This document shows, in pieces, positions 4,010 through 29,274 of a DNA stretch of 64,000 nt. This DNA comes from Perkinsus chesapeaki ATCC PRA-425 (lineage: Eukaryota > Protista > Perkinsozoa). The notes under the pieces are model-generated. The model made no database searches. It saw nothing but the letters and a program-made list of their open reading frames with translations, and was not told the DNA's origin. Within the stretch, counting starts at the first letter, position 1. Each line of letters begins with the position of its first letter. Made by a program: the position numbers and the translations under genes. The DNA is taken from assembly GCA_013115145.1 (NCBI GenBank), contig JAAPAO010000094.1, forward strand, positions 16,080-80,079, read 5' to 3'.

Positions 4010-7000
4010 ATGACCACACTCGGCAGGATTCCTTCCGTTCTCGCTACTGGACTACTAGGAAGGAGCCCAATGAGGCTTAGCGCTGCTGCGCTCTCTCGAG
4101 CAGGCATGACCATAGGCGCGCGGTGGGCTCCGGTCGCTTTGGGAACTCGAGAGCCCATGGGATTCGCGGGACACCAGACGGCTGGCTTCGCTTCAACCAA
4201 AGAAGTATGAATGCTCAGTAGTCTTGCTCCGTCTACGACACCGGTCACGATGGTTCGGCTAGTATTCTGGCCCGGCTGCTGGGGACACATGGAATGTTTT
4301 TCACAGGTCTCATTATCTCATTCATCGATCATGTCCGGTTCCGGAGCCCAGCCCAACGCTGCTCGATACGTGCTACCCGATAACATTGCTATTAGCGAGT
4401 ATGCCATTCACCTCAAGCCCAATTTCGACAACTTCCTCTTTCAAGGATCCTCAAAGATTTCACTTGCTGTGACGAGGCCCACGAAGACGATCAAGCTCAA
4501 TGCTAAGGAACTCTCCATCGACCCTAGCGTAGGCCCGTACGGGTGGGAGAGATTGGGCGTATGTGTTGTTGGTGCTCAGGTGACCTATACTCCCGTTGGT
4601 GGTTCACCTATCACAGCCTCATCCGTTAGTGTGTCTAAGGCCGCTACGGAATGCACATTTGAGTTCCCCGAGGAACTTAAGGTTGGTGAGGGTGAATTAG
4701 CCATTGAGTATGTTGGAACACTTAATGATCAAATGGCTGGTTTTTATAGATCTGGGTAATAATACAGTACAAGTGGATGATATATACTTTAATAGATACG
4801 TTGACCAATTTGGTAAAAATAAATATATGTTGAGCACCCAAATGGAGTCTATTGATGCTAGAAGGGCGTTCCCTTGTGTGGATGAACCCAACCGGAAGGC
4901 TGTGTTCAGAATCACCATCACCACCGATGCCAGCTTGCAGGTTTGCACCCTCAGCTTCCATTGGGCTAATTGTTGGTAGGTTCTATCAAACATGCCCGAG
5001 GCCTCCCGTACTGTCTTCAATGGCGGGTCAGCAGAGAATCCCGTGTCCTACCAGACCGTGGAGTTCATGCCTTCACCGAAGATGAGCTCCTATTTGGTCG
5101 CTTTCTGTGTTGGGCAGTTCGAGTTTGTCCAGGATACCACAAAGAACGGGACTCTGGTAGAGCTGGTATCTTCACTACTTCCGAAGATTCAAAACTGCTC
5201 AGGTTCGTGTCCTCTGCACGCCAGGCAAGCAATCTCAGTGCGGATATGCCTTGGAAGTTGCCACCAGAGTCCTCGCTTGGTAATCTCATACCGTCTAGCG
5301 CGCCACCTGGACCGCTCCTCAGGTACGAGGAATTCTTTGGGATTCCCTATCCGCTGCCGAAGCTCGATCTCATCGCTGTTCCTGATTTCGCCATGGGAGC
5401 CATGGAGAACTGGGGCCTGGTCACCTACAGGGAGATAGACCTGTTGTGCGACGTTGAAAAGGTAGCCTGCGGGCAACTTGATTGTATGTCATTCTTGTGT
5501 GTAGCTATCAACCAAGCGTCGTGCCCGTATTACCTCGACTGTTACCCATGAGCTGGCTCATCAGTGGTTCGGCAATCTTGTCACCATGGACTGGTGGGAT
5601 GGCATCTGGCTCAACGAGAGCTTCGCTTCCTTCATGGAGAACTTGAGCGCCGATGCGCTTTACCCTGAGTTGGGCATGTGGAACACGTAATGAGATAGGC
5701 GGCTGTCGATTCCAAGTAGGTAGTGATACAACAGGTACATTCATCAGTTCTTCGAGGGCGGGCTGGAACTGGACAGTCTTCGCTCCAGCCACCCCATTGT
5801 GGTGCCCATCTATCACGCTGAGGAGGTCGATCAGGTAGGCTCCGGGCTGCGGGCGACTATGTAGAGGTTCGAGTTAGGTCTTTGACCATATCTCTTATGA
5901 GAAGGGATCGGCAGTAGTAAGGCAGCTGTGGGCGGTCCTTGGAGGCGACAAGTTCCAAGAGGGCGTGCGAAGGTATATGAACGCGCACATGTATGGCAAC
6001 TCCGTAACAGAGGATCTGTGGGATGCCCTGGAGAAGGTAATGGTTTGAGGAGAAGTCGGTGGAGTCGGACTGGTGGGGTTTCGTGACAGGTATCTGGGCA
6101 ACCAGTGAGGGAGATGATGGACTCATGGACAGATCAGATGGGATATCCTTTATTAGAAGTTGGTCCACGTGATACAAATGGTAACTGTAAAGTTACTCAA
6201 AGTTGGTTCCTATCTGATGGGTCAATAAAGCCAGGAGATGATGATAAGAAATGGGTTGTACCGATACTTATTGGTGATGATAAAACACCGTCTAATGAAA
6301 TGGGTAAATTAACTATGATGAGAGATAAGACACAAACCATTAATGTTGGCAATGGTAAATGGGCTTTGTTAAATTATGGTGCTTGGGTGCCGTATAGAGT
6401 TCATTACACTTCATCTGATGAATATAATAAAATCCTCGCTGGTGTAACTGATAAGACTGTTCCCGTTCCCAATAGAGTTAACCTTTTGGGTGATATCTTT
6501 GCTTTAACCAAAGCTGGACGTGTTAGCCCTGAAGATGCTCCTCGAGTATCAAAGGCGTATAGCAACGAGACCGATGCAGATGTATGGGATGCTTTATCTA
6601 ATCTTATCGGTGGACTTTCGACTATCTGTACTGGTCTTGGTCGTACGGCTGAACTCGATAAGTTGGTATCTGATATGATCGCTCCTCAACTTAATAAAGT
6701 TGGTTGGGAAAGGAAGGCTGGCGAAAGTCCAAAGGATCGTCAGCTGAGAGCTTGCTTGGCTGGTTTGGCATCCCAACATTGTGCTTCCGATAAGTCACTC
6801 GCCACGAAATGTGCCGAAATGACTCGGGCATTCCTTGAGGATAAGAGCTCCCTTGCTGAGGACGTTCGTGTTCCTGTGTTCCGATTAGCCTTGGCCGGCA
6901 GCGATCCTTCAGTTGGTGAGGAGTTGTGGAATGAGCTCATCAAGGTGGCCGAAACCTACGAGACCCCACAGGGCTGCCGGATGGATATTTACGTCAGTAT

Positions 7001-7449
7001 TGGTTTCATTGCCAGCCCTGCCCTCAAGAAGCGCACCCTCGACATGTGCCTTACCAACTTCATCAAGCCTCAGGATTACTTCTACCCCATGGGCGGCGTC
7101 CGTATATCCAATCAAGAGGGATCTGATATGACATGGAAGTGGCTCTTGACCAACATAGAGGCCTGCAAGGCTCGAGTGGCCACGGCCAGCTCCTCCCTGT
7201 TAGCTGGTGTGATGCTCAACTGCACCAGGAGAGGCCTCACCTACGACATGGCGGACAACGTGGAGAAGTTGGCCAGGGAGCACGACCTTGCCTCAGTAAG
7301 CCATCCCGCCGACCTTCCTCGATTATTGTTGCTTTCAGATTTCCCGAACCATCTCCCAGATAGTCGAGAACATCCGCTCCAACGCTGCCATGGTTGAGCG
7401 TGCTAGAAAGAGCGCCATCTCCACCCCGGAGTACTGGGCTGATCTCTGA
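4010..7449 (+). CDS. M1 family (puromycin-sensitive type) aminopeptidase, copy 1, with a putative mitochondrial presequence exon
   Basis: Motifs [36 protein letters not shown]...WLNES and SYEKG, followed by an ERAP1_C-like tail. Leader exon 4010-4204, intron 4205-4306, in-frame internal ATG at 4331, stop TGA at 7447-7449. Confidence 0.95.
4556..4888. repeat. About 333-bp near-identical block shared by copies 1 and 2 (partner 8205-8537), including an identical AT-rich intron
   Basis: Direct sequence comparison. The intron gtaataatacagtacaagtggatgatatatactttaatag occurs in both copies. Confidence 0.9.
6121..6262. repeat. 142-bp near-identical core shared by all four aminopeptidase copies (also at 9761-9902, 13566-13707 and 17345-17486)
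   Basis: Direct comparison: copies 1 and 2 are identical, copy 3 has two A/G differences and copy 4 has one G/A difference. Flanks in copies 3 and 4 are highly diverged. Confidence 0.95.
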
Positions 7450-7592
7450 GCCCCCACCAAAGGGCGTTATCGTCCTGCTGAGCTATCAGCAATGCTTCGC
7501 TACAAATGTGCGTCCGTAGATACCTTGTGCTACCGAGTTTCTTAACAACCGTATCCCTTACCCGCGGTATGTTGTGTTCCTAACGGGAGGCC

Positions 7593-10500
7593 ATGTGCTC
7601 TTTTCGACCAGTTTTCCTCGAAAAGATGCCACTGCCAGTCCTGGGCAGCCGATTGGGCCGTCCGTTGGCTGCCTTGTCCTCCGCAATGGTACCGTTGTGT
7701 AGACCACTGTGTGCATCGTTGAAGCCGCCTCGGTGGGCTGGACTGGTTCCAAGAGTGATCTGTACGAAGACTGCTACATCAGATTTGGTATGACATGTCC
7801 ATGCTTTGTGTGACCTTTTCGATCTTTGGTGTTGCGATGGGAGTGCTCCAAGTGGTGCGCGGTGATTGAGCTAGTGGAATCTTGTGAAACGGGAGAAAGA
7901 TGCAAACTAGGTCGATTCGGAGCCCAGTACTTTTCCTAGATAATGTGATATATTTTGTCGTGTAGGTATCGGCAGCAGCTTCCCGTTCATCTATGGCCAC
8001 ATCATCTCGCTATGTCTTACCGGACAACATCGATGTCCGCGAATACGACATTCATTTGAAGCCCAGCTTCGAGACCTTTCGCTTCCAGGGGACCTCCAAG
8101 ATATCCTTGGCCGTCACCAAGCCTACAAGGGTCATCAAGCTGCATGCGAAGGAGCTTGCTATCGACCCTAAGGTGAGCTTGAGAGAATCTTGGTGGGACC
8201 TTTTGGCGTATCTGTTGTTGGTGCTCAGGTGACCTATACTCCAATTGGTAGTTCACCTATCACAGCCTCATCCGTTAGTGTGTCTAAGGCCGCTACGGAA
8301 TGTACATTTGAGTTCCCCGAGGAACTTAAGGTTGGTGAGGGTGAATTAGCCATTGAGTATGTTGGAACACTTAATGATCAAATGGCTGGTTTTTATAGAT
8401 CTGGGTAATAATACAGTACAAGTGGATGATATATACTTTAATAGATACGTTGACCAGTTTGGTAAAAATAAATATATGTTGAGCACCCAAATGGAGGCCA
8501 TCGACGCCAGAAGGGCGTTCCCTTGTGTGGATGAACCAGAGCGCAAAGCTGTCTATAAGGTTACCATCACCACCGAGGCCAACCTCCAGGTGGGTCGCTA
8601 CGGTCCCTACGTTTCTGAGAGGTTGATTATCTAGGTTATCTCTAACATGCCTGAGTCCTCTCGAACCATCTTCACCGTCGACAGCGGTGATGCCGCCAAA
8701 GCCTACCAGACCGTGTCGTTCATGCCCTCCCCCAAAATGAGCTCCTATCTGGTTGCTTTCTGCGTGGGAGAATTCGAGTACGTCCAGGGGACTACCAAAA
8801 ACGGCACTTTGGTGAGCTTTCAGTAACCCCGGTGGCCCCAGCAGAGCTCTTCTCAGGTTCGCGTCCTTTGTACTCCAGGCAAGCAAGCTCAGTGCACCTT
8901 CGCCTTGGACGTGGGCATTCGCTGCCTTGAATGGTACGGCGACGGCCCCTAGTGCTACAGTTTGACCTCAATACGTCAGGTACGAAGAGTTTTTCGGAAT
9001 TCACTATCCTCTGCCTAAATTGGATATGATTGCTGTTCCCGATTTTGCCATGGGGGCCATGGAGAACTGGGGCCTGGTCACCTATAGGGAGATAGACCTC
9101 TTGTGCGACGCCGATAAGGTAGACCGAGCTCCCTTGTGTGTTTGTGGAAGCTGCCCTCAGGTTTCTGTAAATCGTCGCGCCAGACTGGCCACTGTTGTCA
9201 CCCATGAGCTAGCCCATCAATGGTTCGGCAATCTTGTTACCATGGAGTGGTGGGATGGCATCTGGCTTAATGAAGGCTTCGCTACCTTCATGCAGTATGC
9301 CTCCGCTGAAGCCCTTTTCCCCGACTGGGGCGTTTGGAACTCGTAAGCCGCCTGAGCCAATTCTCTTGTGACTGCCAACCTCAGGTACATCCACGAATCT
9401 TTCGAGCGCGCCTTGGCCTTGGATGGCCTTCGGTCAAGCCATCCTATTGTGGTCCCGATCCACAAGGCTGAGGAGGTCGAGCAGGTAAGCTGAAGGATGG
9501 CGCGGTTTCACAAGTTGCCTGTTGGTAGGTTTTCGATGCCATTTCCTACATGAAGGGCTCAGCAGCGGTACGGCAGTTGTTCGCCGTGGTCGGTGCTGAG
9601 AAGTTCCGTGATGGAGTTCGCCATTATATGAAGACTCACCAGTATGGGAACTCGGTTACAGATGATCTGTGGAGAGCTTTGGAGGAGGTAGTCTGAGGAG
9701 CGGTCGTAGAGCACAACGGGTTTGGTCAGGTATCTGGGCAACCGGTGAAGGAAATGATGGACTCATGGACAGATCAGATGGGATATCCTTTATTAGAAGT
9801 TGGTCCACGTGATACAAATGGTAACTGTAAAGTTACTCAAAGTTGGTTCCTATCTGATGGGTCAATAAAGCCAGGAGATGATGATAAGAAATGGGTTGTA
9901 CCGATACTTATTGGTGATGATAAAACATCATCTAATGAAATGGGTAAATTAACTATGATGAGAGATAAGACACAAACCATTAATGTTGGCAATGGTAAAT
10001 GGGCTTTGTTAAATTATTGTGCTTGGGTGCCGTATAGAGTTCATTACACTTCATCTGATGAATATAATAAAATCCTCGCTGGTGTAACTGATAAGACTGT
10101 TCCCGTTCCCAATAGAGTTAACCTTTTGGGTGATATCTTTGCTTTAACCAAAGCTGGACGTGTTAGCCCTGAAGATGCTCCTCGAGTATTAAAGGCGTAT
10201 AGCAACGAGACCGATGCGGATGTATGGGATGCTTTATCTAATCTTATCGGTGGACTTTCGACTATCTGTACTGGTCTTGGTCGTACGGCTGAACTCGATA
10301 AGTTGGTATCTGATATGATCGCTCCTCAACTTAATAAAGTTGGTTGGGAAAGGAAGGCTGGCGAAAGTCCAAAGGATCGTCAGCTGAGAGCTTGCTTGGC
10401 TGGTTTGGCATCCCAACATTGTGCTTCCGATAAGTCACTCGCCACGAAATGTGCCGAAATGACTCGGGCTTTCTTGGAAAATCCCGACGCCCTCGCCGAC

Positions 10501-11367
10501 GATGTTCGTGTTCCTGTGTTCCGATTAGCCTTGGCCGGCAGCGATCCTTCAGTTGGTGAGGAGTTGTGGAATGAGCTCATCAAGGTGGCCGAAAGATACG
10601 AGACCCCACAGGGCTGCCGGATGGACATTTATTTGAGCATCGGCTATATTGCCAGCCCTGCCCTTAAGAAGCGCACCCTCGACAAGTGCCTTACTAATTT
10701 CATCAAGCCTCAGGACTTCTTCTACCCCATGGGCGCGGTTCGAACCTCAACCGTTGAAGCGGGCGATTTGACCTGGCAGTGGCTGTTGTCGAATTTCGAT
10801 GCCTGTCGATCTCGAGTGGCCACCGCCAGTCCTTCCTTGCTCGCTGCAGTCGTGTCCAGCTGCGCGAGAGGCTCAGTTACCTATGAGATGGCCGACAATG
10901 TAGAGAAGCTGGCCAGCGATAAGGGACTTACTTCGGTAGGTTATGGGATACTTCCTCCAACATCCAGGTTTGGAGAGTCTCGATTAGTCCCTTTGAATCT
11001 TAAGCAATGTACCCTTAATACGAACACATTCGATTCTTGCGGTTTTTCTATCCCCTTTTTGATGTGGATTTTTTTCCGAGGGAATAAATTTAACAAAATG
11101 TGGCATTGCCTGTCATTTCGAATGGCACGGAATTTAGCCTGTTTTTCCGCCTTGCAGCACTCAGAAGTGCATTGGCTTGACACCGTTGACGGTGGGTAAC
11201 TCGTCGGGCTCAACAACTGAGAAAGGCCAACGGATATTCCATTATTTTTTCATCAGATATCGCGAATCATCTCCCAAATATGCGAGAACATCCGATCCAA
11301 CGCAGCCCTGGTCGAGCGTGCTAAGAGCAGTGCCATCGCCTCTCCCGCATTCTGGCAGAGCCTCTAA
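7593..11367 (+). CDS. M1 aminopeptidase, copy 2, with a putative mitochondrial presequence exon
   Basis: Motifs [31 protein letters not shown]...WLNEGF and SYMKG. Leader exon 7593-7787, intron 7788-7965, internal ATG at 7993, stop TAA at 11365-11367. Confidence 0.95.
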
Positions 11368-11573
11368 GCTCTGCAGCGTTTTCCCCGACTGCCGGTCAAA
11401 CCGTCATTTTCGGGCTCCCGCCCGCTCCACTATGAACACCATTCGTGGAGCGCTATTTTTTCTGTGATATCTTTGCTCCGTGTGTAAGGAGATTTTTGAG
11501 GTAACCTTAATAGGATTGGCGAGTTGTGTTTTCAAATCTTACGAGGCAACAGGAAAGTATTTTTTAAACGACA

Positions 11574-14500
11574 ATGACAGACGTTCTACCGAAGAACATT
11601 TCGGTAAAAGAATATGATATCCACATAAAGCCCAACCTGGAAACGTTCCAGTTCGAGGGTTCCTCAAGGATCTGTTTAGCCATCACTCAGCCGACAAAGT
11701 CTATCAAGCTGCACGCGAAGGAGCTGGCTTTCGAGCCTAAGGTACAACCGTCCGGGTATGCGTCACGCGCCACAGCCGCTGTCCCCTTTACAGGTTGTTT
11801 TTGCTCCTTCTGAAGGCGAGCCTATCGAGGCCTCGTCCGTCCGGCTGCTCCCAGACTCCAGCATTGTCAGCTTCGAATTTGATGAGGAACTACCAGCCGG
11901 ATTTGGTGTACTTAGCGTGGAATATGTCGGCACTATAAACGATCAGATGGCAGGTTTTTACAGATCAAGGTGGGCGGCTGGACACTCGTAGCTGGGCTCA
12001 TCTGCAGTGTTCAGTTACACTGACCTAAACGGAAAACAGCGATTTATGGGAACAACGTTTTTTGCACTGATCCATGCCAGAAGAGCCTTCCCTTGCATTG
12101 ATGAGCCCGAGGCCAAGGCCATTTTCAAGATCACTATATCTTGCGATGCCCGGTTGCAGGTAGTCGAGAGCTCCAGCGAAATGTGTTGGGCATGTGCTTT
12201 TTCTAGGCTATCTCTAATATGCCCGAGGCCTCCAGAAGCCTCTACAATGGCGGCAGTCCAGATGCCCCTGTGCCCTATCAGAAGGTTGAGTTCATGCCCA
12301 CCCCCAAAATGAGCACCTATTTGGTTGCCTTTTGTATAGGACAGTTCGAGTACCTTCAAGCGACCACTAAGAACGGAACTCTGGTAGCCTTTCGGGGCGC
12401 ATCAATCTTACATTCGGAATCCATTTAAAGGCGAAGCTCGCACCGACTGCTTAGCGACGCCAGCACGACGTTTTTCGAAAATTCGGCTCTACCCTCCCGT
12501 TGGAGCTCCTTATTTCGAGGTGTATCGGAAAATACGTCTTTACGAGGGTTGAGAATATGATTCTTAAGTTCAGGTTCGAACGATCTGCACCCCCGGGAAG
12601 AAGGATCTCTTGCACTTCGCGCTTGACTGCGGTGTGAAGGCGATAGAATGGTGAGCGGTCTCCGCTACTCACATCATTGAGATGCTCCTATCAGGTACGA
12701 AGACTTTTTTGGTCTCCGTTATGCCTTGCCCAAGATGGACATGATCGCTGTTCCTGATTTTGCCATGGGGGCAATGGAGAACTGGGGCCTGGTCACCTAT
12801 AGGGAGACCGACCTGTTATGCGATCCTCGAAAGGTAGTGGTAGATCGCCGCTTGAAGTTACCGCGTCCCTTTAGGCCTCTGTATCTCGTATGACACGTGT
12901 CGCCACGGTTGTTGCCCACGAGCTGGCTCATCAATGGTTCGGCAATCTTGTGACCATGAAATGGTGGGATGAGCTTTGGCTTAATGAAGGCTTCGCTACC
13001 TTCATGCAGTATCTTTGCACAGATGCTTTAATGCCCGAGCTGGGCGTGTGGAATATGTAAGGAAGGCACCAAATGAGCTCGGATATTGAATCGCAGGTAT
13101 ATATCGGACACGTTGGAAGGAGCCCTCGGGTTGGATGGATTGAGATCAAGCCATCCTATTGTGGTCCACCTTGATAGCGCCGAGGAGGCCGAGCAGGTAC
13201 TTGGGAGCCAGGGAGGGCTGGGAACTTGCTCACACTTTACAACCACCTGGTATTCACGTGAAATCAGCCGCAGAGTTGATATTACTTCATAAGTTCCGCT
13301 CGATATTATACTATGGGCTTTTATAAGGTGCTCGACTACATATCCTACAGGAAAGGCTCTGCAGTGGTGAGGATGCTTTGGAGCTTCGTTGGTGGCGAGA
13401 AGTTCAGAGAGGCTCTCCAGTTGTATATGAGGACCCACCAGTACGGTAATGCTACCACAGATGACCTTTGGAACGCTGTCGAGGAGGTACGCGGCCGAGG
13501 GGCCACTTACTGCAGTACATTTGGTGGATGTCAGGTATCCGGGCAACCGGTGAAGGAAATGATGGACTCATGGACGGATCAGATGGGATATCCTTTGTTA
13601 GAAGTTGGTCCACGTGATACAAATGGTAACTGTAAAGTTACTCAAAGTTGGTTCCTATCTGATGGGTCAATAAAGCCAGGAGATGATGATAAGAAATGGG
13701 TTGTACCAGTCTTGGTCGGTGACGAGTCAACACCAGCCGAGTCTCTCGGACGCCTAACTCTACTGAGGAGCAAAGAAGCCGGTTTTAGTGTTGGTCCCAG
13801 CAAGTGGTATATGTTTAACTGGGGGGCGTGGGTGCCATACAGAGTGCTCTACACCTCATCCAGCGACGTTGATGCCATTCTCAAAGCGATTGCCGCCTTG
13901 GAGATTCCCGTGGCCAATAGGATTCATTTCGTTTTCGATGCTCTGGCGCTCTGTAAAGCCGGTCGGGTGCCCCCAGAGGAGCTACCGAAGGTGCTTCTTG
14001 CCTACAGGAACGAGACCGATCCCGATGTCTGGGACGCTCTGGTCCGCGTGATCGGTTCGCTGAACCTAATTTGCTCTGGCATCGGTAAAGGAAAGGATCT
14101 CGAGAATCTTGTCTGCGGAATGATCTCGCCGCTGTTGGCGAATTGTGGCTGGAAAACTAGGAATGGTGATACTGCGAAAGACCGTCAGCTGCGGAGCGCC
14201 ATCACAGCCCTGGCCAGCAGCTATTGCCGGTCGGATAAAGCTCTTGTTGATTCATGCGTGGAAATGACTTTGGATTACCTCGATGACCACAAGAGTGTTG
14301 CCGACGACGTCCGGCCATCGGTGTTCAAATTGGCCCTTGCTGGCAGCGATCCAGCTAAGAGTGAGGAGCTTTGGAGGGAGCTTATGAGGAGGGCAGAGGA
14401 CAAAGGGACACCACAGACGGAGAGAGTGGATATATATCATGCTATAGGGTAATACTTCAAGGCCACCGATCGATATTGAAATCACGCGGGAAGGGGGGCT

Positions 14501-15272
14501 GTGATTAGCGGTAGCTCAATTGTGGAGCTCCGAGAGCGCGAGCAAATATTTAGTACCAGTTTGTCACATGTCTGTTGTGCAAATTGTCCCCTTTTCCAAC
14601 AGCCCATCCCGGATGGCAATCTAGATCTAGAAGGCAATCTTCGGCTCGGGATAGGATTCCTTTCTGTATTTTTGAGCGGAGCGATGCTAACAGTAGTTTC
14701 TCTCTCTTCAGATTCGTATCTAGCCTTCCCCTTAAGCGTAAGGTCCTCGAGTGGTGCCTTACCGATACTGTGAAGACCCAGGACTTCTTCTTCCCGATGG
14801 CCAGCGTCCGCATTTCCTCCGAAGAGGGTGCCGATCTCGCTTGGAACTGGTTGGAGGCTAACTTTGATGCTGTTCATAAGAGAGTTGCCACGGCTAGTTC
14901 GACACTGCTGGCATCTGTTATAGGAAGCTGCTCGAGGAACGCGTGTACAGAAGACATGGCTCAGCGAGTTGAGCGCATCGCAGCGACCAACAATCTCAAG
15001 GAGGTACTATCAGGAATGGGTACCAGTGTGGCGGGTCGGGGTGAAATGCCTGAGGGGCAGCTTGGTTCACAATTGCCGATCCTGTATCGTGAAACGTCCA
15101 GCCTCAGTATCTTCCTCTAGTTGCATGCCATATCGTCTGTCTTTGCCAGATATCTCGGTCAACATCGCAGATAGCGGAGACTATCCGATCGAATGCAGCC
15201 GTTGTTAAGAGAGCAGCGGAATCGCCGCTCGCCACCGAGGCGTATTGGCAAGGCCTCTTCACCACCCTTTAA
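11574..15272 (+). CDS. M1 aminopeptidase, copy 3 (variant [10 protein letters not shown] motif)
   Basis: Start [14 protein letters not shown]. Motifs [18 protein letters not shown]...WLNEGF and SYRKG are intact. Stop TAA at 15270-15272. Confidence 0.93.
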
Positions 15273-15390
15273 GTGTTTGATATGTTCTCATAAGTTTATC
15301 ACAGTACTGAGCGTTGAGCGTTGAGACGGCCCGTGGGTGATTTTTCTCAGTGCATAACTACACTGGACTCCTTACCCTCATTTCCCTATA

Positions 15391-18300
15391 ATGGCAGATA
15401 ACACCGCCAGTCTACTAGACAGCCACGTACACGTCAAGGAATACGATATCCACCTCAAGCCCAATTTCGACACTTTCCGCTTTGAGGGAGCATCACAGAT
15501 ATCTTTGGATGTCGCCGAACCGACCAAGGTCATCAACTTGCACGCCAAGGAGCTGGCCATCAATGCCGGGGTGAGCTGATCACTCGCTAATCCCTATTCA
15601 GTAATATTACTGATAGGTAACTCTCGAGTACCCATGCAGCGGAAAGGTGTATCAAGCTGACTCTATAGCAGTCAGCGAGAAGGACACCACTTGCACCTTC
15701 ACCTTTGCAGAGGAGCTTACCGCTGGTGCAGCAATCCTCAAAGTGGACTTCGTTGGCACCCTGAATGATCAGATGGCCGGCCTTTACCGCTCAGCGTAAG
15801 CCGCGTGAAGCTAAAGCCACAGACTCCGTTGGCAGGTACGTCGACCAGTATGGCAAACCGAAGCATCTGTTGTGTACCCAAATGGAGGCCATTGATGCCC
15901 GACGGGCTTTCCCTTGCATTGATGAGCCCAGCGCCAAGGCCGTATTCCGCATCACAGTCACGACCGAGGCCTATAGACAGGTACGCAGAAGCGAGGTGGC
16001 CTAGTCGAATGTTTCGGTCCAGGTCATTTCCAATATGCCAGAGGCCTCGAGGGCTCTCTTTGCCAAGGAGAACAGCGATAGTCTCATGCAGCGGGTTACC
16101 TTTATGCCCTCTCCCCTTATGAGCCCCTATCTTGTTGCGCTGGTCGTTGGAGAGTTCGAATTCTTACAGTCCTCGACCAAGCGTGGCACACTCGTAAGCA
16201 CTTCATCAGCCATTTTGACCAGCACCATTGGCCATTCAGGTCCGGGTGTTGGCGACACCAGGAAGGAAGGAGCAGTGTCACTTCGCCCTGGATGTTGCTA
16301 CTCGTGTCTTGGAGTGGTAGGCCATCCGTCATCGACCAAGTGCTCCACCTTCCCTCAGGTACGAGACGTTCTTCGGCATGCCTTACCCTCTGCCGAAGCT
16401 CGACCTTGTTGCCATTCCCGATTTTGCCTGTGGTGCTATGGAGAACTGGGGACTTGTCACCTTCCGAGAAGTTGACCTCCTTTGTGATCCTGCCAAGGTA
16501 AGCAAAGGCTGGTTCGTGAGCATCGGTGGATCTCGTGCGAGGCTCAATTTTAAGGCTGCATGCTAGGATTGATTATCTTCAATGGTGGCGGTGCGAAAAG
16601 TGCGATTAAGCCGCAACCTTGTAAAATAATGTGTTTTAAATAGCCCGAGCACATCTCATTAGTTCCCACGTAGTAGTGCTCCGCTGAGAGATATTTCCAA
16701 GCCATTTATTGTGCTTTTCACAAGCTTTTTGTTCAGGTGTCAGTCGGCACCCGCAAGCGCGTGTCTACTGTCGTTGCTCACGAGCTGGCTCATCAATGGT
16801 TCGGCAATCTTGTTACCATGGAGTGGTGGGATGATCTCTGGCTTAATGAAGGCTTCGCTACCTTCATGGAAAATCTCTCGACCGACGCTCTCTTCCCCGA
16901 TCTTGGCGTCTGGAATATGTAAGCCTCCTTGAAGCGCCTCCACTGCTGTTGCTCAACTCGCTCGCAGGTACGTGAGCTCTGATCTCGAGAGCGCCCTCCA
17001 TCTCGACGGCATGAGGTCCAGTCACCCAATAAAGGTGCCGATCACCGCTGCCGAGGACGTTGATGAGGTGAACGACAGCCGGCCATCTGAGAGACACTTT
17101 TTGTGTCATAGGTGTTTGACGCTATCTCCTATGAGAAGGGGTGTGCCATTGTGAGGACCCTGTGGGCCGTACTTGGGCCTGATGCCTTCCGTAAGGGTGT
17201 GCAGATCTATATGGATCGTCACCAGTACAGGAATACACAGACCTCTGATTTGTGGACAGCCTTCGAGGAGGTAAAGGCGACAAGCCAGCCATGCGGGATT
17301 GCGATTTCATCAGGCCTCGGGGCAACCGATCAAGGAAATGATGAACTCATGGACAGATCAGATGGGATATCCTTTATTAGAAGTTGGTCCACGTGATACA
17401 AATGGTAACTGTAAAGTTACTCAAAGTTGGTTCCTATCTGATGGGTCAATAAAGCCAGGAGATAATGATAAGAAATGGGTTGTACCGATACTTATTGGTG
17501 ATGATAAAACATCATCTAATGAAATGGGTAAATTAACTATGATGAGAGATAAAACTCAAACCATTAATGTTGGTAATGGTAAATGGGTTGCCCTTAATTA
17601 TGGTTCCTGGGTCCCGTACAGAGTGTACTACAGCAGCCCTGACATGCGAGCTGCCCTTGCTCAGGCAGTAGCGGACAAAACTCTCCCCGTGGCCGACAGG
17701 ATACAGCTTCTCGCCACCACTAGAGCTCTGGCTAAAGCAAAGCGCTTGACAGTGTGCGAGGCTCTGAACCTTCTCACTTTCTATAAGAACGAGGACGATG
17801 CTGATGTATGGGACGCCATAGCTATCGCCATCTCTGCCCTCGATACCGTCTGCATTGGTGTCGGACGCGGTGATGAAATGAACAAGCTGGTTACTGAGCT
17901 CATCGAAGGCCGCCTTGCTCGGGTTGGTTGGGACTCCAAGCCCACGGACAAGTCCAAGACCAGACAGCTTCGAAGCACTCTGGTGAGATTGGCCAGCAAG
18001 TACTGCCACAGTAACAAGGAGATGGTAGAGAATGCCTGTCAACGTACCCAGGCTTACTTGGAGGATCCCTCCTCGCTCCCGGCAGATATCCGCAGCTCGG
18101 TCCTGAAGCTTGCACTGGCCGGTGGCGGCAACTTCTGGAACGCTCTGAGGGAGCGTGCTGAGCGCTACGATGTTACCAAGACTGAGGTTGTGGACATTTA
18201 CGCCTCGTTGGGTTACGTCAAGGATAAGCGTCTCAAGCAGCGCACACTGGAGTGGAGTCTCGATCCTATCGTCCGACCTTCCGATTACTACACAGTGATG

Positions 18301-18685
18301 GCCTCTGTACGGTCCTCCTCACCTGAGGGTGCCGACATGGCCTGGAACTTCCTCGTCACCAGATTTGACGAAATTAAGGGCAGAGTGTCGACTGCCTGCT
18401 CATCGCTCCTGACATCTGTCTTCTATTCTTGCGCGGGAGGAAGCTCCGATGCCTCACGGGCAGACACACTGGAGCACATGCGAACTGAGAAGAAGCTGAA
18501 TGCTGTAAGTCTTTGATTGGCCTATGCGAGTCCTTTATTTCCTTTTGCCTGTTCAGATAGCACGCGCGCTCTCGCAACTGGTCGAATCGATTCGGAGCAA
18601 TGCTGCCGCAGTGGAGCATGCCCGGGATTCCGATGTGACCAGGGACGAATTCTGGAGTGAGCTCTTCTCAATGCTCAACAACTGA
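15391..18685 (+). CDS. M1 aminopeptidase, copy 4
   Basis: Start [18 protein letters not shown]. Motifs [31 protein letters not shown]...WLNEGF and SYEKG. Stop TGA at 18683-18685. Confidence 0.95.
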
Positions 18686-20893: not shown

Positions 20894-23800
20894 TCAGTGC
20901 TTTTTCGAGGCTTCAAAGGACGTCTTAAGCTCCTTCGCGAGCTCCGCCTCTTCCTCAGTGCTCTGCTGGCAGCTGCGCCATTCGAGCCTTTCCTTCGGCA
21001 GGCCCATGCATTTCACCTACAACTCGCTTGCAGCAGCGGCACGCCTAATTTCCTATTAAACGTACCACAACTTCCCTGCAAAAGTTCATCGGCACGCTGG
21101 TACTCCTCGTTGGTGTCAGCAGCACTCTAGCCTTATTAGGGCCCGGAAGCTGCATGTAGATGTATGGCGGTGTGCCAGTCTCGGTTGTGGTCTTAGCGAC
21201 CTCTGAAAGCACTGTACCGCAGGCTCACCTCTAAGGCACTGTAACTTACCTGCGATTTCTTCTTGAGAATATCTTCCCAACTTATGCAGCTTAAGCTCAT
21301 GATCATCGGCCATAGCCGTAACCTCCTTCAACCACTCTTCAGTATTTGCCGACTGTCCACCCTCCCGAGCCACTCCTATCAAATGCACCTGATTGAACAC
21401 ACAGGAGAATGTGCTTTTTTTCCGATAGCTTTCTCAGTAAGGCCAATACGTTCACGACACTTAATAGCGTTTGGAAGCTCTTGAAAGTGATTTTCAAGCG
21501 GGTTCACCATTGGAGGAGTTGGCAGGAAATGTTTTCAAAGAAGCAGTTGAAATAGGCAGTATGTGCATATATCTACATTCATACTTGTATTGTTATATAT
21601 AGGTATTATAATATTAAAGGTTAATAATGACGGTTGAGTAACAGCGGGAGCCCCACCTGCATGTGCATGGCTGCCGAGCTTCGCATCTGCGCCCAACGCT
21701 CGAAGACTACTATATCAGAGTTGTGCTGGGTATCCAACATATATGTTACTTCATCAATGTACCTACACCAATACCTATACCTTACATGACGTTGAGTACC
21801 TTACTTGTTCATAGCTGTAAAGACCTGTTCAGAGCAGTGTGTGCTGCAAGCGAAGTGGGTGACGGGGCACAGAATCATATGTAAGTCATTTATCGGGCCC
21901 TAAGCTTCGCAATCATTCCAGAACGCTCTGTCATTACGGCTCACCTTTGCCGTCGAAAGATACGCCTCTAGATTGGCCGCGAATATCATATGACGCTCAA
22001 GGTTGGGATTTGCCAGACAGAACCAACAGTCCTGGTGTGGCGAGCTGTCCAACTGCTTCACATCGATCCCTCTGACGTCGGCACCTTCCTTCGGTCGACT
22101 GAATCTCACGATAAGGCGGCGGCCACCCATGTCGAGTTCTTGGCTCTTCTCTCGTGCCAATGTGGCATCTTTCAACGTGGCAAACCGAACCCAACCGAAA
22201 CCTGAACTTCGAGTTCGGACTAGGGCGAGTGAGAATTTACCTCGAATGGAGTCCACGTTAACCCGCTTGAAGCCCGGCATCCCCTCGAAGACCTTCGTCA
22301 GGCTCGACCAAATTGCCTCCTCATTTGACTTGTTCTCTTGCTTAGGAAGATTCGGTATGAAAAGCTCCGTTGAGGGGGTTTCTGGTGCATGCCTTTTAGC
22401 ATCGTGCTGCTGCTGGTGGTGGTAGCCTTCTGGATGCGGTCGCTTATGCGAATACTGTTGAGGATCTATACAGGTAGTATCATATCACATCTAAAATACT
22501 CCTTGGTAACATGAGCGACAGAGAAGCCCCGAGGTGACACTATTGTCACCGTCCATTGACCGCAGTGCTTTACAATCCTCAAACTGTTAATCACTGTTCA
22601 AAGTGCAAGAGTGTTGAACCATTGTTAGAGCACCATGGAAGCGACATAAAAAGGAGTGCATTAAACGCAAGCGTTCCGATGCTCACCAGGACCATCCGCA
22701 AAAGGACATCGCGTTAGGTTATCAGGCATACGAACATCGTTACTTAGGGAGATATTGAGAGCATGAAGCCACCTGGAAGGCAATTAATGCGAAAGTGAGG
22801 CATAAATTTACCTTCTCTCTTTGCCAGTACTGCCTACTTTACCGACACATATCATACGGCAAACTATCTTAGAATCAGGCCAAACAAAGGGCTGCCTCAG
22901 GTAGTACCTTAAAAGAGGACTGTCATTACACAGAACAGGTGATAGGTGTATTTTTTATATGTCAGTGTTGAGCTTGATAATATTATGCTATAGTCTAGAG
23001 GCTTAACTGTCAAAGAAACATCAACAAACTCCTCAAATTGAAGGAAATGTTTTAAAATTGTGTGATGTTCTATTATTTCGTAACGGGGTTCAGTTTTATA
23101 TGAGGGGACTATATCGTATTGTAGAAGCATTCTAGAATCTTTCAGAGGGATTTCACAGAGTTCCGATAAATACCACTAAGGTAGCTTTGGAACAATTATG
23201 CTTTAAAGATGTTATCGATACCTAGGTTGCAGGAAGTATCTTCCCTGCCAACATACACTCGCACAGATCTTCTTCCCAACCCAGCGAGAGCCCCCATGTT
23301 TGCCCTTTACTACATATCAGCATGCCCACAAACAATGTACCGTGGTTTCAGCAACACTGCCATCCGTGATACCTTGATAAGGTAGTAAAGTACTGCCCAA
23401 ACTTCAATCGGCAATATTACCTCCTTGCTGGTAGTAACGTGGGTGACATCAGGAGGGACGCCAGTGATGTCCAGTCCGACGCCGTAGTCGGCCGGCCAGT
23501 CATTGGTAAGCAACACGTCTATCGTAGTGCTCAACGATGAGAAACTATTAGGGGCTTCCGGGAATGCTCGGTGCGGTGTGAATTACTTTTTCTCCAGGGC
23601 AGCAGCGTCCTTGTCATCGGTAATGGCGGCTACGGTGAGCCCAGCAACTTGAACGATGGAGCCACCCTTGATCCCATCCAGATTGCCAACTGAAGGCTCT
23701 TCCAGTGTAGAGGAAGAGGGAACTGTATAGCGCATCTGAAGACACTCGCTTTTCATCAACTCATTGGAGTTAGATAGTTTTCTCGCAAACGTTCAGGGAT

Positions 23801-26095: not shown

Positions 26096-27657
26096 TTAGA
26101 GACTATGGATAAGCTGCTTAGTCTCCTTATATGCCATACCAGCAAGCATTACTGCACTGATACCAAGTGCAATAGGAAGAAGTACGAAAACTGCACCCCA
26201 ACTTAACACCTGTGCGATGGCAGTTACTAGCAGTTGCATCAGAGCTGCCCCAGCAGCGCCCATACCGTCTATTATTCCTGAGACTTGGCCCACTGCCTTC
26301 TTGGGCATCTTATGGCCGAGATCGGCGCAGACAGCACTGGACAAGACATTGGATACTGAGCCCACCAGGAACCCACAGGCGAAGACTGTAGTGGACAAAT
26401 AGGCTGTCGAGGGATGGTCGACACGCAGCATAGCAATTGGTATGATAGCCAATATTAAGAATGCAAACATTGGAGGTGCTCGACAAGAGTCACCACATTT
26501 AGCTGTACAATAATCAGATATAATACCTAATACGAGAGTACCAAATATAACACCCAAATTAAATAACATATCATATCCATTTGCTTCAGCTGATGTCCTA
26601 CCAACATGTTCAGTTAAATATAACGGTAACCAAANNNNNNNNNNNNNNNNNNNNNNNNNNNNNNNNNNNNNNNNNNNNNNNNNNNNNNNNNNNNNNNNNN
26701 NNNNNNNNNNNNNNNNNNNNNNNNNNNNNNNNNNAATAACATATCATATCCATTTGCTTCAGCTGATGTCCTACCAACATGTTCAGTTAAATATAACGGT
26801 AACCAAAAGAACATTGCGTAATTCACGCCCTTTATACAAGCATAAGAGAAAGAATAACGGAGGACACCCGGAGCCCTCCAAGCAGCGAAAAAGTCAAGCC
26901 TATCGCTGTCGGCGTTTTCCCTGGCTTCGGTTTCTGCCCCTCCGTTTGCTGGGTTCAAAGGCTCCTGTAATGGATCGTCGGAGTGTATGGAAAGCCCAAC
27001 TGATTGAGGGTCTCTTGGTAGGAAGTATAGCATACCAGCAGATACCACAACAAGTACTATTGCTGGTCCAAAGAACTGCCATGGTACCGATGCTTTATTA
27101 CCAAATAATTCAATCATTAAAGTGCACATAGCAGCCCCCAGAATGTTACCAACGTTCGAGTCATTAGACCAAATGCCGAAGACCGTACCATAGTACTTGG
27201 GCAGGAAATACTGCCCGACTATCAGAATCCCTGCCGGCCAGCAACCGGACTGGAAGACTGCATTGATGACCCACAGGAAGTAGTAGAAGTAATACCATCC
27301 ACCCTCAGTTGCAGTGGCGACCATTGAACCAAATATGAATTGAGTTATACAGCAGAGCGTCGTCATTAGAAAGAAGATCCTTACCGGATGGTAGAGGTCC
27401 CCTAATGGACCAGTAAAGAACATACCGATAGCATAGAACAACATAAATAATGTATTCATAACACCAAAGAAGGTAGTAGAGTACCCATAATATTCCTTCA
27501 TATTAGGGGTCGCATTTGAGAAGGCCTTTCTCACTGCATGCAGACAAACATAGGTCAGAAATGTCCATAAGAATGCCGACGCTTGGTAGTATCGCTTGCT
27601 GTGCCGAACGCCCGATGACGACGGCCGTTGCATCAACTTTGGATCCTGTTGAGTCAT
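26096..27657 (-). CDS. MFS sugar-phosphate/glycerol-3-phosphate transporter (SLC37/GlpT-like), copy B, interrupted by an N gap
   Basis: TYVCLHAVRKAFS, QSGCWPAG...GTVFGIWS...NVGNILGA and YAMFFWLPLYL, continuing after the gap to VSGIIDGMGAAGAA. Intronless. Confidence 0.85.
26635..26734. other. Assembly gap (100 N) with a 73-nt duplicated overlap on its flanks
   Basis: 26562-26634 is repeated at 26735-26807. Confidence 0.95.
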
Positions 27658-27774: not shown

Positions 27775-29274
27775 CTAAAACTGCTTGATGAGATCCCTGG
27801 TCTCCTCGTAGGCAACCCTGGTCAGAGCTACTGCACTCAATGCCAAGGCGATCGGCAATACAATGAACACATCACCCCAGTTTAAATACTGTGCAATCAG
27901 CATCACTAGCAGTTGCATCAGCGCCGCCCCGACAGCGCCCATACCGTCTATTATTCCTGAGACTTGAGCCACTGCCTTCTTGGGCATCTTATGGCCGAGA
28001 TCAGCACAGACTACACTGGAGAGGACATTCGCCACGGAGCCTACCAGGAAACCACAGACGAAGACTGTGATAGCTAAGTACAGGGAAGATGGGTTGCTCG
28101 CACGCAGCATAGCAATTGGTATGATAGCCAATATTAAGAATGCAAACATTGGAGGTGCTCGACAAGAGTCACCACATTTAGCTGTACAATAATCAGATAT
28201 AATACCTAATACGAGAGTACCAAATATAACACCCAAATTGAATAACATATCATATCCATTTGCTTCAGCTGATGTCCTACCAACATGTTCAGTTAAATAT
28301 AACGGTAACCAAAAGAACATTGCGTAATTCACGCCAGAAATACACGCGAAACAGAACGAGTACATAATAACACCGGGAGCCCTCCAAGCTGCGAGTAAGT
28401 CCAGCTCATCATCAGCGGCAACATCTACCCTTGTAGCCGGCGATTCCTGGCCGTGGCCAACCTCTGAGGTGGTGAAAGACACTCCCCTATCGGAATTCAA
28501 AGGCTCCTGTAATGGATCGTCGGAGTGTATGGAAAGCCCAACTGATTGAGGGTCTCTTGGTAGGAAGTATAGCATACCAGCAGATACCACAACAAGTACT
28601 ATTGCTGGTCCAAAGAACTGCCATGGTACCGATGCTTTATTACCAAATAATTCAATCATTAAAGTGCACATAGCAGCCCCCAGAATGTTACCAACGTTGG
28701 CATTATTAGACCAAACGCCGAAGACCGTACCATAGTACTTGGGCAGGAAATACTGGCTCACAATTACCACGGATGCCGGCCAGCATCCGGACTGGAAAAC
28801 TGCATTGATTGCCCATAGGATATAGTAGAGGTAATACCACCCACTTTGAGTTGCAGTGTCGACCATGGAACCAAATACAAACTGCGTGATGCAACAAAGA
28901 ACGCTCATTAGGAAGTAAACCATTACCGGATGGTAGAGGTCCCCTAATGGACCAGTAAAGAACATACCGATAGCATAGAACAACATAAATAATGTATTCA
29001 TAACACCAAAGAAGGTAGTAGAGTACCCATAATATTCCTTCATATTAGGAGTTGCATTAGTGAAGGCCTTCCTCACTGCATGCAGGCAGGCGTATGTCAG
29101 GAATGTCCATAACAGCACAGACACCTGATAGTAACGCTTGCTGTGCCGGGCACTGGTGGTGGATGATGACTTTGACGATAAGAGTGTCATTACCAACAAC
29201 AGATACCAAAACTGTAATGAGCAATGGAACATACCATGGACGAACCAATCATGGATAAATCGCGGTACACCCAT
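27775..29274 (-). CDS. MFS sugar-phosphate transporter (SLC37/GlpT-like), copy A, intronless; likely start at ATG 29190
   Basis: 499-aa ORF with the same motifs as copy B and about 12 hydrophobic segments. Confidence 0.9.
   Translation of the reverse strand: MGVPRFIHDWFVHGMFHCSLQFWYLLLVMTLLSSKSSSTTSARHSKRYYQVSVLLWTFLTYACLHAVRKAFTNATPNMKEYYGYSTTFFGVMNTLFMLFYAIGMFFTGPLGDLYHPVMVYFLMSVLCCITQFVFGSMVDTATQSGWYYLYYILWAINAVFQSGCWPASVVIVSQYFLPKYYGTVFGVWSNNANVGNILGAAMCTLMIELFGNKASVPWQFFGPAIVLVVVSAGMLYFLPRDPQSVGLSIHSDDPLQEPLNSDRGVSFTTSEVGHGQESPATRVDVAADDELDLLAAWRAPGVIMYSFCFACISGVNYAMFFWLPLYLTEHVGRTSAEANGYDMLFNLGVIFGTLVLGIISDYCTAKCGDSCRAPPMFAFLILAIIPIAMLRASNPSSLYLAITVFVCGFLVGSVANVLSSVVCADLGHKMPKKAVAQVSGIIDGMGAVGAALMQLLVMLIAQYLNWGDVFIVLPIALALSAVALTRVAYEETRDLIKQF

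Follow-up and report, generated by a model that had tools for sequence, protein, structure and literature searches.

In Perkinsus chesapeaki, an oyster and clam parasite, segments of tandem genes that are nearly identical between paralogs are shifted towards A/T. A fixation bias, i.e., AT-biased conversion between paralogs, fits the substitution patterns best and is favoured here at about even confidence. The 64,000-nt contig window analysed carries two tandem arrays, one of four M1 aminopeptidase genes and one of two MFS transporter genes, and the shift was studied in these two families. In both, GC3 is 0.10–0.35 where the copies are 97–100% identical and 0.55–0.75 elsewhere in the same genes. 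An earlier note on this DNA had tentatively ascribed the pattern to a RIP-like mutation system; its tract-linked AT shift stands and is found in the second family, while the RIP-type mechanism finds no support in transversions, sequence context, indices, intact copies or substitution rates.

Gene arrays and converted tracts

Coordinates of the genes and tracts are given in Table 1. Aminopeptidase copy 1, with many GT-AG introns of 40–50 nt, is the ortholog of the first gene in the P. marinus (Pm) array (L001). Copy 4 is orthologous to Po4 of P. olseni (Po; 77%), and RNA contigs confirm seven introns in it (joints 15569/15616 through 17268/17312). Outside the core of tract B, copy 3 groups with Pm3 and Po3 (65–66% identity versus 45–55% to the other copies). 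P. chesapeaki (Pc) proteins named on the contig are FOL47_011153, FOL47_011155 and FOL47_011156. MFS gene A is broken by a scaffold gap, in which an N run (26635–26734) is followed by a duplicated 73-bp flank (26735–26807).

Table 1. Genes and near-identical tracts in the window.
Feature	Coordinates	Strand	Evidence and properties
M1 aminopeptidase copy 1	4211–7449 (limits approximate)	+	Pfam Peptidase_M1 and ERAP1_C matches; ORFs
Tract A, copy 1	4553–4852	+	97% identity to copy 2 tract A
Tract B core, copy 1	6087–6262	+	97–99% identity across all four copies; GC3 0.26–0.30
Tract B extension, copy 1	6263–6830	+	99–100% identity to copy 2 (9903–10470)
M1 aminopeptidase copy 2	7993–11400 (limits approximate)	+	ORFs; Pfam matches
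Tract A, copy 2	8202–8501	+	97% identity to copy 1 tract A
Tract B core, copy 2	9727–9902	+	Identity profiles
Tract B extension, copy 2	9903–10470	+	Identity and GC profiles
M1 aminopeptidase copy 3	11574–15230 (limits approximate)	+	ORFs
Tract B core, copy 3	13532–13707	+	Identity and AT-richness both stop at 13707
M1 aminopeptidase copy 4	15391–18620 (limits approximate)	+	RNA contigs; identity comparison
Tract B, copy 4 (core 17311–17486 and extension common to copies 1 and 2)	17311–17624	+	92–93% overall identity; GC3 0.26–0.27
MFS gene A	26096–27657	-	Ortholog: P. olseni L003:2479-3861
MFS tract 3, gene A	26455–26634	-	98–100% identity to 28134–28313, gene B
MFS tract 2, gene A	26959–27138	-	100% identity to 28501–28680, gene B
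MFS tract 1, gene A	27379–27498	-	98–100% identity to 28921–29040, gene B
MFS gene B, glycerol-3-phosphate-transporter-like, single exon	27775–29190	-	Ortholog: P. olseni L003:627-2006

Composition follows paralog identity

According to identity and GC profiles, GC3 of the aminopeptidase tracts is 0.15–0.35, and normal values of 0.5–0.8 are found outside them. In the big exon, tracts contain 272 codons ending in A/T and 113 ending in G/C, versus 179 and 297 in non-tract sequence (Fisher p = 3e-22). A fall of GC3 with rising identity to the best paralog, a relation that the earlier note had proposed to check genome-wide, is observed in both families (aminopeptidases, Spearman rho = -0.70, p = 2e-12; MFS pair, rho = -0.54, p = 8e-6). 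This correlation is seen only in P. chesapeaki (-0.70 and -0.54 versus +0.17 and -0.02).

The 142-bp core reported earlier (6121–6262, 9761–9902, 13566–13707 and 17345–17486) indeed differs between copies at three sites only (6131, 6152 and 6240), all of them A/G. Recounting gave the same codon numbers as before: 34/42 A/T-ending codons in 6162–6287, and 22/30 in 6387–6476 versus 10/30 in 17611–17700. The points at which normal GC3 had been said to return are likewise reproduced, at 13707 in copy 3 and at about 17605 in copy 4 (GC3 about 0.6); in copies 1 and 2 the return is gradual, after about 6710–6830. In the copy 1 extension GC3 is 0.2–0.35 up to about 6710 and then 0.45; past 6830 the two copies are only about 85% identical, with GC3 of 0.5–0.7.

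The MFS pair represents a second family with the aminopeptidase-like pattern, with P. olseni as the control. The recurrence claimed for this pair is borne out, low GC3 lying within segments of 98–100% identity. The shift is mild in tract 1 (GC3 0.45–0.50 versus 0.55–0.65 in P. olseni); in the other two of the three tracts GC3 is 0.10–0.25 (tract 2, 0.25 versus 0.45–0.75; tract 3, 0.10–0.25 versus 0.25–0.70).

One rival explanation is selection for A/T-rich sequence in these particular segments of P. chesapeaki, which could concern, for instance, the structure of the mRNA, the speed of translation where two domains meet, or a signal in the nucleic acid itself. In its favour, the start of tract B coincides exactly with that of an exon, the tract spans the boundary between the catalytic domain and ERAP1_C, and silent sites of the tracts show unusual conservation when P. 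marinus is compared with P. olseni (third-position divergence 0.33–0.37 versus 0.53 in unique sequence). Against it, the same shift occurs in unrelated protein segments, the MFS membrane helices, and its length follows the conversion boundaries copy by copy (50 codons in copy 3, 95 in copy 4, about 200 in copies 1 and 2) rather than protein features. Amino acids in the tracts have themselves moved towards A/T-richer codons (E>D, V>I, R>K, G>N). The shift also includes a 40-nt intron inside tract A (about 4757–4796) with GC 0.23–0.28; the values for its homologs are about 0.50 (Pm1/Pm2), 0.62 (copy 3) and 0.55 (copy 4), and homologous and neighbouring introns together range over 0.39–0.62. The process thus operates at the level of DNA, and codon selection does not account for it. 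Selection of this kind is considered very unlikely.

Assembly and expression

The sharply different codon usage of the blocks could also be explained by an AT-rich donor (an extra paralog, or a segment that is introgressed or foreign) or by an artefact of assembly or polishing, and the assembly does contain at least one scaffold-gap artefact (26635–26807). De Bruijn contigs were built from two DNA samples and from RNA. Every junction is reached from its unique side by contigs from the two DNA samples, and RNA contigs carry the junctions too; the doubt, raised earlier, that the identical blocks are assembly artefacts is thereby answered, as it is by copy number. The 142-nt core forms its own unitig at 299x against a single-copy depth of 72x, i.e., 4.1 copies, and the next 96 nt are at 200x (about 3 copies), so no further donor copy is present. 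The single-copy contig of copy 3 begins at 13678, k-1 bases inside the tract. The tracts have not diverged further from P. marinus and P. olseni than the unique parts have, and their boundaries coincide with GC-normal tracts in those two species. Donor and artefact are therefore largely refuted and are the least probable of the explanations considered. The block is covered by RNA contigs that splice into it, which shows it to be expressed; reading frames are open in the tract-bearing copies.

Comparison with P. marinus and P. olseni

The same arrays occur in P. marinus and P. olseni, with tract boundaries identical to those of P. chesapeaki and copies in concerted evolution. Among three species with four copies each, core identity is 97–99% within Pc, 95–98% within Pm and 97–99% within Po, versus 76–93% between species. 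Within the core, grouping follows species; beyond its limits, copies 3 and 4 join their orthologs. This is concerted evolution by interlocus gene conversion, and the same applies to the MFS pair in comparison with P. olseni.

Tract GC3 is 0.26–0.33 in Pc versus 0.62–0.71 in Pm and Po; non-tract sequence of Pc has 0.56–0.72. A single-copy paralog elsewhere in the P. chesapeaki genome (L008) has GC3 0.57–0.65 over the homologous codons. Since the sister-species tracts keep GC3 of 0.6–0.7, the AT shift belongs to the P. chesapeaki lineage alone.

Substitution pattern

Changes on the P. chesapeaki branch were counted at positions with the same base in Pm and Po, S>W denoting GC-to-AT and W>S AT-to-GC changes. 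S>W per S site is 0.244 in tracts versus 0.112 in unique sequence (2.2-fold up, p = 5e-5), and W>S per W site is 0.022 versus 0.091 (p = 0.002); these estimates are drawn from a few hundred sites close to saturation, and, the two outgroups being each other's closest relatives, part of the branch may belong to the Pm+Po stem. Third-position W>S is 0.044 in tracts (2/45) versus 0.50 in unique sequence (p = 1e-5), and W>S is thus 4–11-fold lower in tracts. Total branch change barely differs (0.176 versus 0.131).

These figures bear on the main rival explanation, AT-biased mutagenesis associated with conversion or triggered by homology, in which later conversions spread the G/C-to-A/T mutations. 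It generalises the model of the earlier note. Each round of ectopic recombination could add the mutations by way of resection, single-stranded DNA and error-prone synthesis, or a RIP-like homology-sensing deaminase or methylase could do so. Limitation of the shift to homologous tracts and the approximately 2-fold higher S>W per S site agree with it; so do the polarisable differences between copies, few and mostly G>A or C>T, the somewhat lower CpG observed/expected ratio in tracts (0.44–0.76 versus 0.58–0.88), and the slightly higher S>W transition:transversion ratio (about 2.8 versus 2.0, not significant). However, the CpG deficit is not CpG-specific, since GpC too is depleted in the aminopeptidase tracts. 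The differences left between copies in these tracts are few (about 14) and do not tell a mutation bias from a fixation bias. Purely added S>W mutation predicts third-position W>S of about 0.34, against the 2/45 seen (binomial p = 2e-6; still p = 0.003 under a conservative expectation of 0.2). Divergence is not raised overall, third positions of tracts and of unique sequence differing from P. marinus by 0.56 and 0.57, respectively. The loss of W>S changes, which is the main change in rate, comes without a rise in overall rate, unlike what an added mutator predicts, and such mutagenesis is possible but clearly less probable than biased conversion.

Comparison with repeat-induced point mutation

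Fungal RIP, dependent on RID/Masc1 and DIM-2, produces C:G-to-T:A transitions only, in a preferred dinucleotide (CpA in Neurospora). The copies mutate independently at an enormously raised rate, diverge and are inactivated. The P. chesapeaki tracts resemble RIP in the homology-dependent A/T enrichment, which is confined to duplicated sequence. They lack the transition-only spectrum, context, inactivation and raised rate.

The transition excess expected by the earlier note is not seen relative to unique sequence: S>W changes at fourfold sites comprise 41 transitions and 22 transversions (35%) in tracts versus 39:30 in unique sequence (p = 0.37), with 12 G>T and 11 G>A in the tracts. The dinucleotide context that it had suggested examining gave no CpA or CpG preference among the C>T changes (14 CpA, 14 CpC, 14 CpG, 21 CpT). 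By the cut-offs of Margolin (TpA/ApT >= 0.89; (CpA+TpG)/(ApC+GpT) <= 1.03), RIP indices are negative in the tracts (0.69–1.0 and 1.15–1.25, respectively). Neither RIP-style divergence or inactivation of the copies, which are 97–100% identical, intact and expressed, nor a strong rise in substitution rate was found in the tracts. Transversions, lack of context, negative indices, intact identical copies and unraised rate speak against fungal-type RIP, also as a form of the mutagenesis discussed above. The proposed cytosine modification or deamination (5mC, RID/DIM-2-type system) thus failed every test run; no paper on Perkinsus DNMTs turned up in the literature search. A RIP analogue outside fungi, i.e., a homology-sensing DNA-modifying or mutagenic pathway gained by P. 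chesapeaki, which would act on duplicated or freshly converted sequence and whose damage would be hidden by purifying selection and conversion, is disfavoured by the data, with rate estimates from a few hundred sites close to saturation, and appears improbable.

Proposed AT-biased ectopic gene conversion

Under AT-biased conversion, the conversion tracts would be long-lived and would go back to the ancestor that P. chesapeaki shares with P. marinus and P. olseni. When slightly different copies convert one another, A/T would be favoured over G/C, in the P. chesapeaki lineage alone, as a mirror image of GC-biased gene conversion (gBGC). A G/C-to-A/T variant arising in one copy would preferentially spread to the others, and A/T-to-G/C variants would be eliminated. 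Over many cycles, synonymous, replacement and intronic sites in the tract could fall below the neutral GC level of the genome, the copies remaining near-identical and functional throughout. The bias would probably be located in heteroduplex repair or transmission and not in mutation.

Several observations are consistent with such a process. The shift is confined to converted tracts, coding and non-coding alike; in a small near-saturated sample, S>W is up and W>S down for transitions and transversions alike, with the total unraised. Some recently homogenised stretches are unshifted (6730–6830; MFS codons 40–80 and 400–420), as expected if the AT shift accumulates slowly.

Relation to known conversion biases

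GC-biased conversion is known in concertedly evolving families, including mammalian histone and Hsp70 genes and duplicated yeast and Arabidopsis genes. As with gBGC in multigene families, the shift in P. chesapeaki is confined to exchanged tracts, reaches replacement and non-coding as well as synonymous sites, distinguishes strong from weak base pairs whether the change is a transition or a transversion, and raises one substitution direction while lowering the other. Unlike gBGC, it is directed towards A/T and is absent in two congeners with the same tracts. Biased conversion is considered to be GC-directed in nearly all eukaryotes and is a major explanation of GC-content variation; gBGC is described as the general rule (PMC10463633, PMC4524490).

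There is little precedent for AT-biased conversion of nuclear DNA: the papers found call such bias exceptional and place it in plastids only. The case proposed for tobacco plastids (Khakhlova and Bock 2006, cited in PMC4524490) was deduced from transgenic start-codon reversion and is described as exceptional and possibly confounded by selection. Conversion would favour A/T in that case as well; it concerns a many-copy organelle genome, whereas in P. chesapeaki tandem nuclear paralogs are involved and the bias is deduced from substitution patterns. Mammalian tandem arrays are AT-richer than single-copy genes (PMC10463633), a likeness to the AT-rich tandem duplicates described here. In mammals the bias extends over entire isochores and has been put down to low recombination, with little gBGC, and to relaxed selection (PMC10463633), in contrast to the sharp-edged tracts of a few hundred bp within otherwise GC-normal genes of P. 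chesapeaki.

The nuclear conversion tracts of P. chesapeaki would thus be driven opposite to the usual way, the same tracts of two congeners serving as untouched natural controls. If this is true, the direction of conversion bias is evolvable, and three Perkinsus genomes could be compared for the direction-setting repair component (G:T or G:U glycosylase, mismatch-repair factor, deaminase). In the P. chesapeaki genome AT-rich islands within genes would mark paralog exchange, and the AT drive would alter amino acids in conserved enzymes.

Paralog families and homogenised tracts

The contig from which the window comes, JAAPAO010000094.1 of assembly GCA_013115145.1, is 80,079 bp long, and its proteins are named Perkinsus chesapeaki in NCBI. 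The shift toward A/T was examined in two gene families, the M1 aminopeptidases and the MFS transporter pair, which together contain all low-GC segments of the window with recognisable coding content. Seven introns of aminopeptidase copy 4 are supported by RNA contigs. Tracts of the aminopeptidases kept identical among paralogs were defined by repeat finding, self-BLAST and unit alignment.

Features of the window (positions in nt unless stated)
Feature	Position	Description
M1 aminopeptidase genes (Peptidase_M1 + ERAP1_C)	4.2-18.6 kb	four, tandem; many 40-50-nt GT-AG introns
Tract A, copy 1	4553-4852	97% identity to copy 2
Tract A, copy 2	8202-8501	97% identity to copy 1
Tract B, copy 1	from 6087 (exon start)	~740 bp
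Tract B, copy 2	from 9727 (exon start)	~740 bp
Tract B, copy 3	from 13532 (exon start)	176 bp
Tract B, copy 4	from 17311 (exon start)	~300 bp
Core of tract B, copy 4	17345-17486	142 nt
Identical, unshifted stretch	6730-6830	
Variant stretch, copy 3	12007-12110	15 residues
AT-rich stretch in CS/CwfJ gene	22921-23220	~300 bp, GC 0.33, minus-strand open
MFS transporter genes	26-29 kb	two, tandem, single-exon, minus strand
N run	26635-26734	100 N
Duplication flanking the N run	26562-26634 = 26735-26807	exact, 73 bp
ORFs	30293, 32041, 38600, 42727	no Pfam match
Tandem repeat arrays	60300-60724	two, AT-rich, 32-bp unit; 5.9 + 4.2 copies, 97-99% matches

In the codon alignment, aminopeptidase GC3 is 0.15-0.35 inside the tracts vs 0.5-0.8 outside; 272 tract codons end in A/T and 113 in G/C, compared with 179 and 297 non-tract codons (p = 3e-22). 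GC3 falls as identity to the best paralog rises, with rho = -0.70 for the aminopeptidases. The earlier note had claimed that the coupling recurs in the MFS pair, and it does: rho is -0.54, and GC3 is 0.10-0.25 in two of the three identical segments. Its counts were reproduced as well, both for the core shared by all four copies (three differing sites, all A/G) and for A/T-ending codons in the three stretches it named (34/42, 22/30 and 10/30).

The stretch 6730-6830 and MFS codons 40-80 and 400-420 are identical between paralogs yet unshifted. Such stretches fit a slow cumulative drive and are at odds with copying of an AT-rich template.

The shift extends beyond synonymous positions. The 40-nt intron within tract A has a GC content of 0.23-0.28; its homologs have 0.50 in P. 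marinus copies 1 and 2, 0.62 in copy 3 and 0.55 in copy 4, and the other introns of copy 4 have 0.39-0.60. Tract amino acids are also shifted to those with A/T-rich codons (e.g., E>D, V>I, R>K, G>N). Selection on codon usage is thus ruled out; moreover, the shift tracks conversion boundaries, which differ by copy. Selection acting on the segments themselves is unlikely. Simple relaxation to neutrality provides no explanation either, since tract GC lies under the non-coding baseline.

Assembly, copy number and expression

The region 13300-18300 was compared with Logan contigs from two DNA samples. Single-copy contigs enter each tract by k-1 bases (e.g., 13678-16808 and 16839-17374). The core forms its own unitig at 299x, against a single-copy depth of 72x, which corresponds to 4.1 copies; the 96 nt after it are covered at 200x, or about 3 copies. 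These depths indicate that the genome has exactly the four visible copies, with no additional donor of AT-rich sequence. Expression of the AT-rich version is shown by RNA contigs, which enter the block by a splice joining 17268 to 17312 and also span 17374-17552. An assembly or consensus artefact is rejected by the junction-spanning contigs from both DNA samples together with RNA, and an extra AT-rich donor copy by the depth of the core and its extension; explanations of either kind are highly improbable.

One contig of RNA run X6 departs from the assembly past 17589 and carries a third codon version, also AT-rich (...NYGAWVPY). It may represent another allele, or a strain with a different tract end.

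Comparison with P. marinus and P. olseni

A syntenic four-gene aminopeptidase array is present in P. marinus (locus L001), and P. olseni has both the aminopeptidase array and the MFS pair (L002, L003, L009). The same segments are homogenised in both species, with the same boundaries as in P. chesapeaki: in the big exon, copy 3 departs after ~50 codons and copy 4 after ~95, while the sequence shared by copies 1 and 2 extends over >240. Core identity within species is 97-99% in P. chesapeaki, 95-98% in P. marinus and 97-99% in P. olseni, and 76-93% between species. In codons 100-240, copies 3 and 4 are closest to their orthologs (65-77%), with 45-55% identity to other copies. An identity matrix of this form is classical for concerted evolution.

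Base composition differs between the species. GC3 of the tracts is 0.26-0.33 in P. chesapeaki vs 0.62-0.71 at the same columns in P. marinus and P. olseni; the non-tract parts of P. chesapeaki have 0.56-0.72. A negative control within the P. chesapeaki genome is provided by a single-copy paralog on another contig (L008), with GC3 of 0.57-0.65 at homologous codons. In neither P. marinus (rho = +0.17) nor P. olseni (rho = -0.02) is GC3 correlated with paralog identity. The shared boundaries and the normal GC of the sister-species tracts indicate that the tracts are old and shared, and that the AT shift is derived in the P. chesapeaki lineage. The broader idea of the earlier note, an AT drive coupled to homology, is supported, the sister species now serving as natural controls.

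A generic effect of concerted evolution, whether relaxed selection or GC-biased conversion, is excluded, because the P. marinus and P. olseni tracts are concerted yet unshifted and because tract GC is below intron GC. Introgression or foreign origin is likewise rejected, as GC-normal tracts with the same boundaries occur in the sister species and divergence is not elevated. In the big-exon codon alignment, P. marinus and P. olseni diverge at silent sites by 0.33-0.37 in tracts vs 0.53 in unique sequence; judging from these alignments, tracts seem to evolve slower even without the AT shift.

Several observations accompany the arrays. P. marinus has a second M1 aminopeptidase region (L005, GG677256.1) with two tandem copies adjoining an MFS gene, and P. 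chesapeaki has one more distant copy with normal GC3 (L008, JAAPAO010000247.1). At the variant stretch of copy 3, TQME(A/S) and ten further residues stand in the remaining copies and in the sister species. One P. olseni assembly (JABANP010000010.1, from L009:4157 on) has copy 2 frameshifted ~110 codons into the big exon, with merged or split models for the adjacent genes; the frameshift is probably an assembly error, because copy 2 is intact in another assembly of this species (L002). A fourth Perkinsus-like lineage, represented by a Logan contig (L006), is of little further use as an outgroup, its distance being similar to that of the others.

Substitution spectrum and rates

The earlier note had proposed a RIP-like mutation system. 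This mechanism finds no support, strict fungal RIP failing in four of the five defining features open to test. Where the amino acid is conserved, fourfold sites of the tracts show 41 S>W (GC-to-AT) transitions and, unlike the products of fungal RIP, 22 S>W transversions, with G>T (12) about as frequent as G>A (11); the same class in unique sequence gives 39 and 30 (p = 0.37 against tracts). C>T changes in tracts show no preference for a 3' neighbour, and the RIP indices are negative (TpA/ApT 0.69-1.0; (CpA+TpG)/(ApC+GpT) 1.15-1.25), again at variance with fungal RIP. CpG is mildly depleted in tracts, as is GpC in the aminopeptidase tracts.

Rates were taken from differences of P. chesapeaki from a state shared by P. 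marinus and P. olseni. These two outgroups are much closer relatives of each other, with 89-93% identity in the core, against 76-81% between P. chesapeaki and either of them.

Rates of change in P. chesapeaki (counts from a few hundred sites, with roughly 50-60% third-position divergence)
Change	Tract	Unique	p
S>W per S site, all positions	0.244	0.112	5e-5
W>S per W site, all positions	0.022	0.091	0.002
W>S per W site, third positions	0.044	0.50	1e-5
Total change	0.176	0.131	

By a two-state calculation, the tract rate is ~1.7x unique for S>W and ~0.07x unique for W>S. A model with added S>W only expects ~0.34 W>S at third positions, whereas 2/45 are observed (p = 2e-6; p = 0.003 at a conservative 0.2). 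Raised S>W and strongly lowered W>S with no gain in total rate form the signature of a fixation bias.

The best-supported reading, to which about an even chance could be given, is an AT-biased form of ectopic gene conversion with its origin in the lineage of P. chesapeaki. Its main rival, a possible though doubtful one, is a conversion-linked or homology-triggered mutator. Such a mutator could account for the 2-fold S>W excess and for the differences remaining between copies, which are mostly G>A and C>T, but it leaves both the collapse of W>S and the unchanged total rate unexplained.

The finding is best described as a variant of biased gene conversion with the direction reversed, apparently undescribed. 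In the papers found, GC-biased conversion is treated as the rule (PMC10463633, PMC4524490), and the single AT-biased case that has been proposed, that of tobacco plastids (cited in PMC4524490), is regarded as exceptional. According to a review, RIP is mostly confined to Ascomycota, and a similar process in non-fungal species is only speculated. No earlier description, and no account of nuclear AT-biased conversion between paralogs, was found in full-text literature covering gene conversion and DNA methylation in Perkinsus, AT-biased conversion, and RIP in organisms other than fungi.

Other AT-rich and irregular features of the window

The N run and its flanking duplication in the MFS region are a scaffold-gap artefact unrelated to the AT shift. 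The gap splits the frame of MFS gene A, and deletion of 26635-26807 makes it continuous again. The AT-rich stretch in the CS/CwfJ gene probably reflects an insertion or the enlargement of an intron, because ~510 nt of the window at this site correspond to ~150 nt in P. marinus. The GC content of only 18-26% at 60-61 kb is due to the two AT-rich repeat arrays located there; a tandem array of the same 32-bp period at L008:6148-6457 has normal GC.
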